Part shown: positions 43,904 to 49,531 of the stretch, in pieces
Layout: each line of letters starts with the position of its first letter
How positions within the stretch are numbered: the stretch's first letter is position 1
From: Macrostomum lignano
Lineage: Eukaryota
NCBI GenBank assembly: GCA_002269645.1
Contig: NIVC01001876.1
Span: forward strand, 57,118 to 121,117
DNA length: 64,000 bases
Direction of reading: 5' to 3'
Translations under genes and position numbers: made by a program
The notes under the pieces: model-generated
Database searches by the model: none
What the model was told of the DNA's origin: nothing
Seen by the model: the letters and a program-made list of their open reading frames with translations, nothing else

Positions 43904-46900
43904 TCAAAACACGCTATCATCAGTGCCCGTCTCGTCCAGAAACTGTTTCCAAACAACTGGAAACTGATTAAACACCAAATCCTTGAACTGATCTCTCTGC
44001 GTAGACAAACGACGAACGCAAAAGTTCAACAAATCAGCTCCGATCTGCTGCCACCGTTGAGTAATCTCGCTGCTCAGGCCGAGCCAATTCTGTATCTCGC
44101 GAATTCTTTTATGAATATTTTTCTGATGCATATTGGCATCGAATTGGCCGGGTCGTTTCGCGCCTAACGAGGCGGCTGATTTGATTTTTTCGCGCAGTGC
44201 TCGGATCAGAATGTACCAGGCGGTTTTCTTTTTTAACAAGCCGATCACTTCGTTTGATGCGTCGATAAAGTACAGCACTTCGCCTTCGTAGCCGTGGCCG
44301 CGGCGGATCTGCCGGTGGTGCAAGTTTTCTTAGTAAGTTTTTAGAATAGATTAACAACGCTGGTGGTTGAATTTTTCCATGGCTAATATTTGATAGGGCG
44401 ATTCTTTTACAGGTAATTTTTGGGGGTGATTCTGTTTTGGCGATCATTATATACAGGAATAATTAATCTACATAAGATTCTTTCTCAAGAGCTCTATTTC
44501 TTTCTAGGGGGCGATTTTTCTCATAGGCGATTTTTTCTAGTGGCGATTTTTCCTGTAAGCTATTTCCCTAAGAAAGATTTTTCTTAAGGGCGAATTTTCT
44601 AGAGGCGATTTTCCTAGGGGCGGTTTTTCCTAGGGCAATTTTCCTAGGGGCGATTTTTCCTATGAACGGTTTTTCCTATGAGCGATTTTCCTAGGGGCGA
44701 TTTTCCTAGGGGCAATTTTCCTAGGGGCGATTTTTCCTATGAACGGTTTTTCCTATGAGCGATTTTCCTAGGGGCGATTTTTCTAGGGGCGATTTTCCTA
44801 GGGGCGATTTTTCTAAGGGCGATTTTCCTAGGGGCGGTTTTTCCTATGAACGGTTTTTCCTATGAGCGATATTTCTAGGGGCGATTTTTCTAGGGGCGAT
44901 TTTCCTAGGGGCGATTTTTCTAAGGCCGATTTTCCTAGGGGCGGTTTTTCCTATGAACGGTTTTTCCTATGAGCGATATTTCTAGGGGCGATTTTCCTAG
45001 GGGCGATTTTCCTAGGGGCGATTTTCCTAGGGGCGATTTTTCTAGGGGCGATTTTCCTAGGGGCGATTTTTCTAGGGGCTATATTTCCTAGGGGTGATTT
45101 TTCCTAAGAGATACTTTTCCTGGGGTCGATTTTCCTAGCAGAGATTTTTTTCAGGGGCGATTAATTCTAGGGGCGATTTTTCCAAGTTAGTGATAATGAT
45201 TAACTTTTCACTTTAAAGCATCGATAGTTAAACAGACAATAAAAACATTTAAAAACAATTTATGCTATCTACCAGTTCGCAGACGGATTCAAATTCCGAA
45301 GGCTCGCAGACTTCGTAGCTAGTCGGATCCAATCCGAAACTGTCCCTGGCCAAGTCTATGGCCGAATCTGGCGGCATGTAAGACATGCTCACGCTGTCTA
45401 TGTCGTGACTTGTGAACGTTATGAACTTCGGAATTGGCCTGAAATAAAGTGCAGTTCAAATGAAGAGGTCTATCTTGGTGTCATTGAGGTCTATCTTGGT
45501 GTCATTGAGGTCTATCTTGGTGTCATTGAGGTCTATCTTGGTGTCATTGAGGTCTATCTTGGTGTCATTGAGGTCTATCTTGGTGTTTATCGAGGTATAT
45601 CTTGATGTCATTGAGGTCTATCTTGGTGTTTATTGAGGTATATATTGGTGTTTATTGAGGTCTATCTTGGTGTCATTGAGGTCTATCTTGGTGTCATTGA
45701 GGTCTATCTTGGTGTCATTGAGGTCTATCTTGGTGTTTATCGAGGTATATCTTGATGTCATTGAGTTCTATCTTGGTGTTTATTGAGGTATATATTGGTG
45801 TTTATTGAGGTCTATCTTGGTGTCATTGAGGTCTATCTTGGTGTCATTGAGGTCTATCTTGGTGTCATTGAGGTCTATCTTGGTGTCATTGAGGTCTATC
45901 TTGGTGTTTATCGAGGTATATCTTGATGTCATTGAGGTCTATCTTGGTGTTTATTGAGGTATATATTGGTGTTTATTGAGGTCTATCTTGGTGTCATTGA
46001 GGTCTATCTTGGTGTCATTGAGGTCTATCTTGGTGTCATTGAGGTCTATCTTGGTGTCATTGAGGTCTATCTTGGTGTCATTGAGGTCTATCTTGGTGTC
46101 ATTGAGGTCTATCTTGGTGTTTATCGAGGTATATCTTGATGTCATTGAGGTCTATCTTGGTGTTTATTGAGGTATATATTGGTGTTTATTGAGGTCTATC
46201 TTGGTGTTTATTGATGTCTATCTTGGTGTTTATTAAGGTCTATCTTGATGTTTATTAAGGTCTATCTTAGTGTTTATTGAGGTCTATCTTGGTGTTCATT
46301 AGGTCTATCTTGGTGTTTATTAGGTCTATATTTGGTTTTTATTAGGTCTATCTTGGTATTTATTGAGGTCTATCTTGGGGTTTATTAGGTCTATCTTGGT
46401 GTTTATTGAGGGTCTATCTTGGTGTTTATTGAAGTCTATCTTGGTGTTTATTGAGGTCTATATTTGGTGTTTATTGAGGTCTATATTTGGTGTTTATTAG
46501 GTCTATCTTGGTGTTTATTGATGTCTATCTTGGTGTTGATTGACATCTATCTTGGTGGTTATTGACGTCTATCTTGGTGTTTATTGAGGTCTATCTTGGT
46601 GTTTATTGAGGTCTATCTTGGTGTTTATTGAGATCTATTTTGGTGTTGATTGACGTCTATCTTGGTGTTTATTGAGGTCTATCTTGGTGTTTATTGAGGT
46701 CTATCTTGGTGTTTATTGAGGTCTATCTTGGTGTTTATTGAGGTCTATCTTGGTGTTTATTGAGGTCTTATATCTTGGTTTTTATTGAGGTCTATCTTGG
46801 CGTCATTGACGTATACGAGCATGGCCTAATTAAGAAACAACCTTGATGAAATGCAAACTTACACTTTATTAGTGAGCAGTTCAATGTGCTGATGATCACT

Positions 46901-49531
46901 GTACAGTATCTCAAACACAGCTGTCACAAACTGTTCCCTCAAATAGTCGACAAATGCCTTGCGGTTGTCGGCTGGCAGCTGGTCAAAGTAACACAGAAAA
47001 TCTGCACAAAATTTGCGAGCCACTCGGCACCTGTCGTGGGTGAAATGCTGCAGATCCTCTGGTTGGAAGGAGGAATCAAACAATCATATAATTAATATCA
47101 CATCTAATTGCAACCATAGCAACCATTTTGCGTCCATAGTAACCAATTTCGCGTCCATAGTAACCATTGTTGCATCCATATTAACCATTTCTGTCTTCAT
47201 AGTAACCATTTTGCGCCTACAGCAACCATTTTGTCGGCCGTAGTAAACATTTTTGCGGCCATAGTAACCATTTTTGCGCCTATAGCAACCATTTATTCGG
47301 CCGTAGTAACTAATTTTACGTCCATAGTAACCGTTTTTGCGTCCACAGTAACTAACTTTGCGCCCATAGCAACCATTTTACACCCACAGTAACGGTTCTA
47401 CAGACCATTTCCATAACATCCTGTTTACGACCCTAGTAACCATTTTTGCGATGGTAGTAATCGTTTGTGGAAGTTTTGCGACACTAGTAATCATCTGGTG
47501 CCTTCAGTAACCATCTTTGTGTCCCTAGTAATAGCCTAGTAACCAATTTTGAGACCCTAGTAACTAATGCAATTATATACTTACCGAACTGCCTAAACAA
47601 AATATGAGTGTTTTTTGATCCGCCCAAAAAGTAGTCCACACCGCCCAGTCGAATGACGGCCACGTGCAGCGCCTCGCCGTTGGCTTTGCGAGTTCGAACT
47701 AGCCGGGTTGCCGAGGCGATTGGCTTGGAAAAGTACTGGTGCCACACCTGCGGGTGGAAATTTTACAAGCATGCTGATACATATGAAGGTACGACCTTTA
47801 ATCTCCTGACTAAATTAACTAACTAACTAACTAAGTAACTAACTAACTAACTAACTAACTAACTAACTAACTAACTAACTAACGAACTAACTAACTAACT
47901 AACTAACTAACTAACTAACTAACTAACTAACTAACTAACTAACTAACTAACTAACTAACTAACTAACTAACTAACTAACTAACTAACTAACTAACTAACT
48001 AACTAACTAACTAACTAACTAACTAACTAACTAACTAATTAACTAACTAACTAACTAACTAACTAACTAACTAACTAACTAACTAACTAACTAACTAACT
48101 AACTAACTAACTAACTAACTAACTAACTAACTAACTAACTAACTGCCTAACCAACTGACTGACTAACTAACCAAATAACTAACTAACTAACTAACTAGAC
48201 TCAACAAGCCCCGTGCTCACCTGATCTGCAACGCAATCGGACCTGTCATCGTCATCGCCAGAACCTCCGGTGAACTTTTTCAACGCTTTTAAAGCTACGT
48301 AGGTGCCAGGCGGAGCCGACTGAAGGCAGCTGGCTTTACTGTCGCCTGCGCCTTCATCGCGATGCATCTTTCCTTGTAGTCGGACCTCCAGAACCGTGTT
48401 GCCCCTGGCAACCATTTTACGCAGATCGGCGTGCCGATCGTAAACGGCATCGTCTGGCCCGTGCTTGACTTTTACCTAACGGCACGGTATGCATGCGTGC
48501 TCAGGAAGAAATACAAATGATGGAGACTGCACCTCTCTGAACTACTACTACATACTCGGATATACTCGTACTATAATTGTGGGCGCCATCATTTTTTTTG
48601 GGGGGGCAGGTCCCTCTTGAACCCCTCTCTTGGCTTGGTCCCCTGCTCTTGCTCTTCTTTCAGTTTCTTAGCAATGAACAGTTAATTTAGTGACTTTAAG
48701 AGAATTAATATAAAAAACTTTTTTATGGACAGTCGTAATGTACATTAGACCAGCGCCACTGAAAATATAATAATTAATTTGTCAGCCGCGCGGCGGGTTC
48801 AAGAGGGTCGCCAATAAACAACTTTGATTAGTCAGCCGCGGCGTAGGGAGGTAAGAGGGTCGCCAATAAACAACTTTGATTAGTCAGCCGCGGCGTGGGG
48901 GGGTAAGAGGGTCGCCAATAAACAACTTTGATTAGTCAGCCGCGGCGTAGGGGGGTAAGAGGGTCGCCAATAAACAATTTTGATTAGTCAGCCGCGGCGT
49001 AGGGAGGGGGGGTAAGAGGGTCGCCAATAAACAACTTTGATTAGTCAGCCGCGGCGTGGGGGGGGTAACAGGGTCGCCAATAAACAACTTTGATTAGTCA
49101 GCCGCGGCGTGGGGGGGGTAAGAGGGTCGCCAATAAACAACTTTGATTAGTCAGCCGCGGCGTGGGGGGGGTAAGAGGGTCGCCAATAAACAACCTTAAG
49201 TCGGCCATCTTGTACTCATGAAAAAGCAGAAAGCTGTTATGCTACAGACCTGAACATCGTGCAGAATGCATTGATAACCCTTGGGTAATATGCAATCTGG
49301 CACCGTTGTGGTATGAAGTTTCACGTGAGCATGATTGCTAGCCCAGTTGAGATATCTGCACGTTGAAATAAATTTAGCTCGTAACAGTGATAAAAGCCAT
49401 AAAAAGCATATTGGTCGAGACATGTCGCGAAGCATTAATCATTACCTCTCTCCTTGTTCATTTCGTTCCTGCCACGTGAGTACAGTACAGGCAGTTGCAT
49501 TCGACGAGGCGCTTGCATCCTCAGTTGCCAT
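43904..49531 (-). CDS. Stand-alone ATP-dependent RNA ligase-like protein (T4 Rnl1 / fungal Trl1 ligase-domain type), 458 aa
   Basis: Exons 49531-49446, 49355-49250, 48475-48221, 47747-47585, 47058-46863, 45438-45273 and 44308-43904 are all GT-AG and phase-consistent (1377 nt). Motifs in order: ARGN, KKFTG, TRKANG (I), GSKN (Ia), TAVFEIL (III), YEGEVL (IV), LLKKK (V), WY..IRALRE. Confidence 0.75.
44500..45185. repeat. 16-17-bp tandem repeat GGGGCGATTTT(T)CCTA in ligase intron 6
   Basis: Directly visible. Confidence 0.9.
45463..46800. repeat. 21-bp tandem repeat GAGGTCTATCTTGGTGTCATT filling ligase intron 5
   Basis: Directly visible, with higher-order variant blocks. Confidence 0.95.
47115..47560. 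repeat. Degenerate tandem repeat (CATAGTAACCATTTT...) in ligase intron 4
   Basis: Recurrent TAGTAACCA motif. Confidence 0.75.
47812..48197. repeat. (AACT)n microsatellite in ligase intron 3
   Basis: Directly visible. Confidence 0.95.
48780..49195. repeat. ~52-bp tandem repeat in ligase intron 2
   Basis: Unit GTAAGAGGGTCGCCAATAAACAACTTTGATTAGTCAGCCGCGGCGTGGGGGG, about 8 copies. Confidence 0.9.

Follow-up and report, generated by a model that had tools for sequence, protein, structure and literature searches.

A seven-exon gene of the flatworm Macrostomum lignano that probably encodes a stand-alone Trl1-type RNA ligase

Introduction

The closest described relative of the gene treated here is BfRNL, a stand-alone RNA ligase of the lancelet that was characterised in 2010, reportedly by Englert et al. 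(PNAS 107:16834). This enzyme needs a 3'-OH/2'-phosphate end, and it complements a yeast trl1 deletion once the healing domains are supplied (PMC10946426); the study is cited in PMC3400036 and PMC10946426. A 2012 review lists BfRNL as gi|260818956 and states that its family is missed by the Pfam RNA_lig_T4 model and needs a hidden Markov model of its own. Here we analyse a comparable gene at positions 43904-49531 of a 64,000-nucleotide stretch of the M. lignano contig NIVC01001876.1 (the window). We consider it likely, with a probability of roughly 0.85, that its product is an ATP-dependent 5'-3' RNA ligase that stands alone and shares ancestry with the ligase (adenylyltransferase) domain of fungal Trl1 and, more distantly, with T4 Rnl1.

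The Trl1 ligase clade, termed Rnl6 in the naming of the Shuman laboratory, is set apart by its handling of the 2'-phosphate. Trl1 residues N150, H227, R334 and R337 hold a sulfate that mimics the RNA 2'-phosphate, and they have been described as unique to that clade (PMC6379707). Mutating both arginines impairs the ligation of 2'-phosphate substrates; plant ligases lack both, and T4 Rnl1 does not ligate 2'-phosphate ends (PMC12440814). Reviews of tRNA ligation in animals name RtcB as the animal enzyme and treat a yeast-like pathway as hypothetical there (PMC13247085).

Results

An intact seven-exon gene with an ordered series of ligase motifs

Between 43.8 and 49.7 kb, six-frame translation revealed seven exons on the minus strand, from 49531 to 43904, that join in one reading frame. 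The spliced coding sequence of 1377 nucleotides (nt) specifies 458 amino acids and a stop codon, and all six introns have GT...AG borders. An earlier model-made reading of the letters (the original prediction) had proposed such a gene, with seven exons spliced in phase to a 458-residue protein; its outer coordinates and length are exact, and the protein matches PAA63062.1 ('hypothetical protein BOX15_Mlig013642g4', Macrostomum lignano) from end to end with 100% identity. The features of the gene, all on the minus strand, are as follows.

Exon 1, 49531-49446: 86 nt; ATG at 49531-49529; donor AG|GTAATG, phase 2; the intron on its 3' side has the position and phase of an intron in the lancelet orthologue
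Exon 2, 49355-49250: 106 nt; identical in the second genomic copy (L001)
Exon 3, 48475-48221: 255 nt; ARGN at 48409-48398; family-specific KKFTGGSGDDDD loop at 48280-48245
Exon 4, 47747-47585: 163 nt; motif I KANG at 47687-47676; motif Ia SKN at 47618-47610
Exon 5, 47058-46863: 196 nt; motif III TAVFE at 46924-46910; Q260-H261 at 46891-46886
Exon 6, 45438-45273: 166 nt; motif IIIa strand region (KFITF) and linker to motif IV
Exon 7, 44308-43904: 405 nt including the TGA stop; codes for a predicted C-terminal helical domain
Motifs in exon 7: EGEV (IV) at 44287-44276; KKK (V) at 44233-44225; RALRE at 44203-44189
Introns 2 to 6, within 44309-49249: 774, 473, 526, 1424 and 964 nt, each mostly one tandem-repeat array

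Every motif quoted by the original prediction is present, and in the order it gave: ARGN (residues 87-90), KKFTG (130-134), TRKANG (168-173), GSKN (192-195), TAVFEIL (249-255), YEGEVL (331-336), LLKKK (348-352) and WY..IRALRE (355-364). K170 of the KANG motif in exon 4 is the predicted adenylylated lysine. An intact seven-exon gene with such a series of motifs is far beyond chance.

The predicted fold is that of the Rnl1/Trl1 branch of RNA ligases

In Pfam the protein matches only DUF7920 (PF25536; 32.2 bits against a cut-off of 27, E 7.3e-8), a domain also found in 25 of 26 relatives. The highly conserved alignment of this 26-sequence family served as input for an AlphaFold2 model with a mean predicted local distance difference test (pLDDT) of 88 and a predicted template modelling score of 0.87. 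In this model the KKFTGGxGDDDD loop, with seven residues invariant across the 26 sequences, is predicted to be disordered (pLDDT < 50).

When the model was compared with the PDB by Foldseek, the best match was 9qw7_A, the adenylyltransferase domain of the Candida glabrata tRNA ligase (E 1e-9; template modelling score 0.70, normalised to the 372-residue target), followed by archaeal Rnl3 ligases and then Naegleria Rnl5. All 17 matches at E <= 0.001 are ligases, comprising RNA ligases (Trl1, Rnl3, Rnl5) and the African swine fever virus DNA ligase; an RNA-editing ligase, other DNA ligases and capping enzymes appear at weaker E-values. Profile-profile alignment with hhalign, using a 72-sequence family profile, gave a probability of 94.7% and an E-value of 5.6e-8 over 247 columns against Trl1 ligase domains, and an E-value of 1.3e-5 against T4 Rnl1 over motifs III to V. 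The Trl1 sequences for this comparison came from a PDB search baited with a yeast Trl1 N-terminus, from which only the chains 9qw7_A and 6n67_A were kept. Helices are predicted at residues 354-451, after motif V; the Foldseek alignment covers nearly the full target, and the hhalign alignment ends at residue 373. Among the 26 relatives, seven match PF09511 (RNA_lig_T4_1) below threshold, the best at 27.4 bits against a gathering threshold of 28.3. The fold search, the profile-profile alignments and these sub-threshold matches support placing the window protein in the Rnl1/Trl1 branch of covalent nucleotidyltransferases, the class to which the original prediction had assigned it. Its further statement that no kinase or phosphodiesterase is fused to the ligase is likewise correct, as the 458 residues form a single domain that differs from the trifunctional Trl1/RNL architecture.

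The catalytic residues and the 2'-phosphate pocket of Trl1 are conserved

The hhalign alignment places the flatworm residues opposite those of Chaetomium Trl1, whose numbering offset was checked against residues named in the literature:

R88: Chaetomium R99, N-terminal subdomain (RG)
K131-F132: Chaetomium K120-F121, N-terminal subdomain (KF)
K170: Chaetomium K148, motif I nucleophile
N172: Chaetomium N150, motif I, 2'-phosphate pocket
S193-K194: Chaetomium S168-K169, motif Ia
E253: Chaetomium E218, motif III
H261: Chaetomium H227, 2'-phosphate pocket, after motif III
E332-G333: Chaetomium E300-G301, motif IV
K350, K352: Chaetomium K323, K325, motif V
R360, R363, E364: Chaetomium R334, R337, E338, 2'-phosphate pocket (RxxRE)

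Across 72 diverse members of the family, each of these residues is either invariant or conserved to at least 90%; within the pocket, R360 is invariant and the others reach at least 90%. The KxxG of motif I is followed by motifs Ia, III, IV and V in the order that defines covalent nucleotidyltransferases. The residues that the original prediction had listed as essential positions of T4 Rnl1 and Trl1 each fall on the corresponding catalytic position.

Several results weigh against a Trl1-type assignment. PF09511 gave no match in the window protein at E <= 1. Among PDB sequences, phmmer with the window protein found no match, a search with the 26-sequence profile returned only chance TPR matches, none of them significant, and the 72-sequence profile (hmmsearch) touched T4 Rnl1 at a borderline E of 0.05 without reaching Trl1. 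Within the protein, Tyr337 stands in place of the motif IV Arg305 with which Trl1 contacts adenine N1, the aromatic residue of motif IIIa has no clean alignment to Trl1, and the acidic loop KKFTGGxGDDDD (residues 130-141, window 48245-48280) has no Trl1 counterpart and corresponds to an 8-residue gap in the hhalign alignment. Moreover, a tRNA scan of the 64-kb window found no tRNA gene.

The borderline match makes T4 Rnl1 the nearest solved structure by sequence alone, and one may ask whether the flatworm enzyme works like T4 Rnl1 and seals ordinary 2'-OH/3'-OH and 5'-phosphate ends, for instance in nicked anticodon loops. Consistent with this, the essential positions of the T4 sequence (RG, KF, KxxG, SK, FE, EG and KxK) all have counterparts in the same order, the profile-profile alignment to T4 Rnl1 reaches E 1.3e-5, and the fold is matched by models of phage RnlA. 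However, the T4 sequence continues after motif V as WYVSLHST and contains no RxxR, whereas the family keeps the RxxRE and the histidine after motif III that build the 2'-phosphate pocket of Trl1. In addition, the best structural match is Trl1 rather than T4 Rnl1, and some distant relatives are fused to a 2H phosphodiesterase, an enzyme class that leaves a 2'-phosphate. We therefore regard a T4-like activity as quite unlikely.

Since the residues that bind the 2'-phosphate in Trl1 are conserved (N172, H261, R360, R363), the flatworm ligase would most likely need a 3'-OH/2'-phosphate end, which would make it the sealing half of a heal-and-seal pathway. In a Trl1-like reaction, K170 of motif I (KANG) would attack ATP to form ligase-(lysyl)-AMP, the AMP would be passed to the 5'-phosphate RNA end, and the 3'-OH of the other end would attack, so that AMP is released and the break is sealed. 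Healing by a 5'-OH kinase and a 2',3'-cyclic phosphodiesterase, as well as removal of the junction 2'-phosphate (Tpt1), would have to come from separate proteins. The most likely function is thus an ATP-dependent sealing of 5'-phosphate to 3'-OH/2'-phosphate RNA ends with separate healing partners. By homology to Trl1 we infer the catalysis, the 2'-phosphate requirement, the partners and the possible substrates (tRNA halves, XBP1-type mRNA or damaged RNA).

Expression, copies and age of the gene

The annotation of the NIVC01 assembly was built on a genome-guided RNA-seq transcriptome; the assembly is highly duplicated, and simple and tandem repeats make up 15% (PMC5730564). Because the annotation derives from this transcriptome, the exon junctions rest on transcripts. 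The ligase locus is an expressed and most likely functional gene of M. lignano. The 90% cluster of PAA63062.1 holds two more GenBank proteins from other contigs, one of which is a complete 458-residue model. At least three near-identical copies of the gene are thus present in this polyploid genome. The second copy examined (locus L001, NIVC01000544.1) has seven exons with the same boundaries and splice sites as the window gene.

L001 and the window gene are distinguished by 23 coding differences, of which 19 are synonymous and 4 non-synonymous, and the exons differ by 1.7%. The ratio of non-synonymous to synonymous substitution rates (dN/dS) of 0.057 indicates that both copies are under strong purifying selection.

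The original prediction had described the introns as filled with satellites. This applies to introns 2 to 6, where Tandem Repeats Finder detected, in order, a 52-mer x7.4, TAAC x95, a 21-mer x12.8, a 22-mer x61.6 and a 15-mer x44, but not to intron 1, which has 90 nt and no array. Given the 15% tandem repeat in the genome, such introns are ordinary for M. lignano. The arrays vary in length between the near-identical copies while the exons are conserved: L001 and the window gene have introns of 205 versus 473 nt (intron 3), 795 versus 1424 nt (intron 5) and 1396 versus 964 nt.

The orthologue of Branchiostoma has nine exons according to the gene structure that we derived. Three of the six flatworm introns, namely those 3' of exons 1, 4 and 5, match lancelet introns in both codon and phase. 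The shared introns mark the gene as one of old bilaterian descent rather than recently acquired.

Two UniProt models of M. lignano (P0130 and P0131, 439 residues) are named 'RNA_lig_T4_1 domain-containing' and 'SWIM-type domain-containing'. They lack 19 residues (GVDYFLGGSKNTHILFRQF) that contain motif Ia and look like mis-spliced older predictions.

Distribution of the family and identity of the lancelet orthologue

Orthologues occur in many invertebrates at E-values of 1e-94 and weaker, with about 35-43% identity across phyla. Named homologues come from molluscs, nemerteans, a bryozoan, an annelid, a rotifer, a tardigrade, springtails, crustaceans, hemichordates and lancelets. The family is therefore present in at least ten invertebrate phyla and is widespread rather than a lancelet oddity. 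The 120 best homologues include no vertebrate, insect, nematode, echinoderm or cnidarian sequence. When 1.84 billion cluster representatives were searched exhaustively with a profile, 1621 family members came up at E <= 0.001. Several mollusc orthologues carry the name 'actin-binding protein IPP-like', which has no domain support and looks like an annotation artefact.

The second-best match is the lancelet orthologue (XP_002604648.1 / XP_035679797.1), with 42% identity over 96% of the length and three introns in common. Like the BfRNL family, which is missed by the RNA_lig_T4 model, it matches only DUF7920, and the Branchiostoma cluster contains a single 2009 RefSeq model, XP_002604648.1. This protein is very likely BfRNL itself, although literature searches with the gi number, the accession and the locus tag found no link from gi|260818956 to the accession, and neighbouring numbers gave only unrelated papers. 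Searches under DUF7920 or the Mlig gene identifiers found no papers either. It is unlikely, in our estimation, that the DUF7920 proteins form a further class of animal ATP-dependent RNA ligase distinct from the BfRNL family. If they did, this class would be widespread in invertebrates and protists, lost in vertebrates, and marked by an invariant acidic loop of its own (KKFTGGxGDDDD); it could act in the repair of RNA breaks, or of tRNA as hinted by the B3_4 fusions described below, alongside RtcB.

Domain fusions and viral homologues

Fusions to healing enzymes are confined to two distant relatives. In P0264 (902 residues) the ligase is followed by a P-loop kinase (GIPGVGKS) and then by a 2H phosphodiesterase (HVTL...HVTI; weak PF08302); in P0259 (811 residues) the kinase and 2H phosphodiesterase come first and the ligase last. 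These arrangements tie the ligase domain to healing enzymes that make 5'-phosphate and 2'-phosphate ends. Used as a query, the kinase-phosphodiesterase part of P0264 retrieved three unnamed proteins, none from Macrostomum.

Some long relatives from metagenomes and transcriptome assemblies (P0042, P0051 and P0066; 640-710 residues) have a C-terminal extension with a sub-threshold match to B3_4 of the phenylalanyl-tRNA synthetase beta chain (best E 5.9e-6, 26.4 bits against a cut-off of 29.3), which hints at tRNA as a possible substrate. In P0158, P0193 and P0171 the ligase domain is combined with a Methyltransf_16 lysine methyltransferase (E 1e-19 to 6.5e-22) or with HAM1_N; these could be real fusions or merged gene models.

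The protein might also have kept the nucleotidyltransferase fold for another role, as a pseudo-enzyme, a nucleic-acid binder, a ligase of other substrates or an 'actin-binding protein IPP-like'. The DUF7920 label, database names unrelated to RNA ('actin-binding protein ipp-like', 'SWIM-type domain-containing') and the unexplained features of the family, i.e. its acidic loop and the Tyr that replaces Trl1 Arg305, could be read in this way. Yet the catalytic residues are invariant or nearly so across the 72 sequences, so that a pseudo-enzyme is not expected, and both the low dN/dS and the relatives fused to RNA end-healing domains argue against a different role. Neither the window protein nor any of the 26 relatives has Pfam support for actin-binding or kelch domains. 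Taken together, another role is very improbable.

Strong structural matches are also found in large DNA viruses. Among predicted viral structures (BFVD) the best is the full-length A0A8K1ZQR6, an unnamed UniProt entry (E 5e-33), next to the 'T4 RNA ligase' A0A6G9HDT9 of Panulirus argus virus 1 from spiny lobsters (E 5e-32, 26% identity, template modelling score 0.79). These, like the further homologues encoded by Cafeteria roenbergensis virus (CroV; E3T4N1) and several metagenomic giant viruses, match over their full length, and phage RnlA proteins come next with E-values of about 1e-8 to 1e-10. The large-virus homologues suggest gene exchange between viruses and hosts. In view of these matches, and of a location amid satellites and beside a transposon remnant, the locus could in principle be a mis-assembly, a pseudogene, a contaminant or a recent viral or horizontal insertion. 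Such an origin is hard to reconcile with six spliceosomal introns, three of them common to lancelet in position and phase, with at least three annotated copies in an RNA-seq-based annotation, with purifying selection, with orthologues across invertebrate phyla and with flanking genes of an ordinary animal kind. Its probability is close to nil.

Neighbourhood of the gene

The other genes recognised in the window are ordinary animal genes:

4723-8545: ankyrin-repeat protein, then a multi-pass membrane open reading frame
18312-18665: PIH1-domain protein
23139-30003: GTP_EFTU-family GTPase
36773-37204: single-exon profilin
58744-61263: multi-RRM protein (TIA1-like)

No kinase, phosphodiesterase or Tpt1 is among these listed neighbours in the window. 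The GTPase gene is interrupted by a long coding-like satellite of the 'RSGAILKV' type at 27.4-29.6 kb. An element of about 630 bp (43005-43634) lies 270 bp downstream of the ligase stop codon. Its terminal inverted repeats span about 126 nt (36 nt at 97% and 90 nt at 87%), and between them lies what is left of the helix-turn-helix of a Tc1/mariner- or paired-type transposase reading frame (42906-43616). Just upstream of the ligase start codon is a satellite at 49686-50158 (15-mer x32), and long satellite arrays occupy the left end of the window (410-2811), consistent with the 15% tandem-repeat content of the genome.

Discussion

Our analysis indicates that strong purifying selection maintains a probable Trl1-type sealing enzyme with an intact predicted 2'-phosphate pocket in a flatworm. 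The original prediction had presented it as a little-studied animal ligase with a precedent in lancelet. The family is filed under DUF7920, for which public databases still give no function, and a 2026 review on tRNA ligation in metazoans passes over it (PMC13247085). On the other hand, the gene had already been annotated, and the family is widespread in invertebrates. The gene is thus already known, as a GenBank 'hypothetical protein' and a Pfam DUF7920 member, and it is a further member of the stand-alone sealing ligases of the Trl1/BfRNL type. The gain is incremental rather than conceptual, as the kind is already known from lancelet. M. lignano, which presumably also has RtcB, offers transgenesis methods and an annotated genome (PMC5730564). 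Therefore, the role of the heal-and-seal pathway alongside a presumed RtcB is directly testable there.

Among known systems, BfRNL is the closest in kind, as it and the window protein are both stand-alone animal ligases without a kinase or phosphodiesterase. The flatworm protein differs from the lancelet orthologue at its N-terminus, which is shorter, and by some 20 lineage-specific residues inserted at ~96-118 (low pLDDT). The best structural match is the fungal Trl1 ligase domain (PDB 6N0T, 6N67, 9QW7), which the window protein matches in motifs I, Ia, III, IV and V as well as in the 2'-phosphate pocket; Trl1 carries an all-helical C-terminal domain, and the flatworm model has predicted helices after motif V. 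The differences are considerable, however: the two share only about 15% identity, the flatworm protein lacks a fused kinase or phosphodiesterase, its N-terminal ~70 residues are unaligned, it carries Tyr for Arg305 and an extra GGxGDDDD loop after the K-F motif, and it belongs to Pfam DUF7920, not PF09511.

The stand-alone RNL of Mucorales ('sealing-only Trl1'; PMC10946426, PMC10946435) resembles the window protein in being ligase-only, in conserving the RxxR arginines and in needing healing enzymes from elsewhere in the genome. The Mucorales enzymes, however, are orthologues that stand close to Trl1 (49-55% similarity to the ligase domain of yeast) and have only recently shed their healing domains, whereas the animal family is an old and deeply diverged lineage. 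T4 Rnl1 (PDB 2C5U, 5TT6) shares the nucleotidyltransferase core, motifs III to V, which align, and the upstream RG and KF, but it has neither RxxR nor the histidine of the pocket, possesses a different C-terminal domain and joins 2'-OH/3'-OH ends. Human RLIG1 (C12orf29) is also an animal RNA ligase, which uses ATP and 5'-phosphate/3'-OH ends (PMC13247085); it presumably belongs to a different family. RtcB, finally, represents another family, being GTP-dependent, with a histidine nucleophile and ligation of 3'-phosphate ends.

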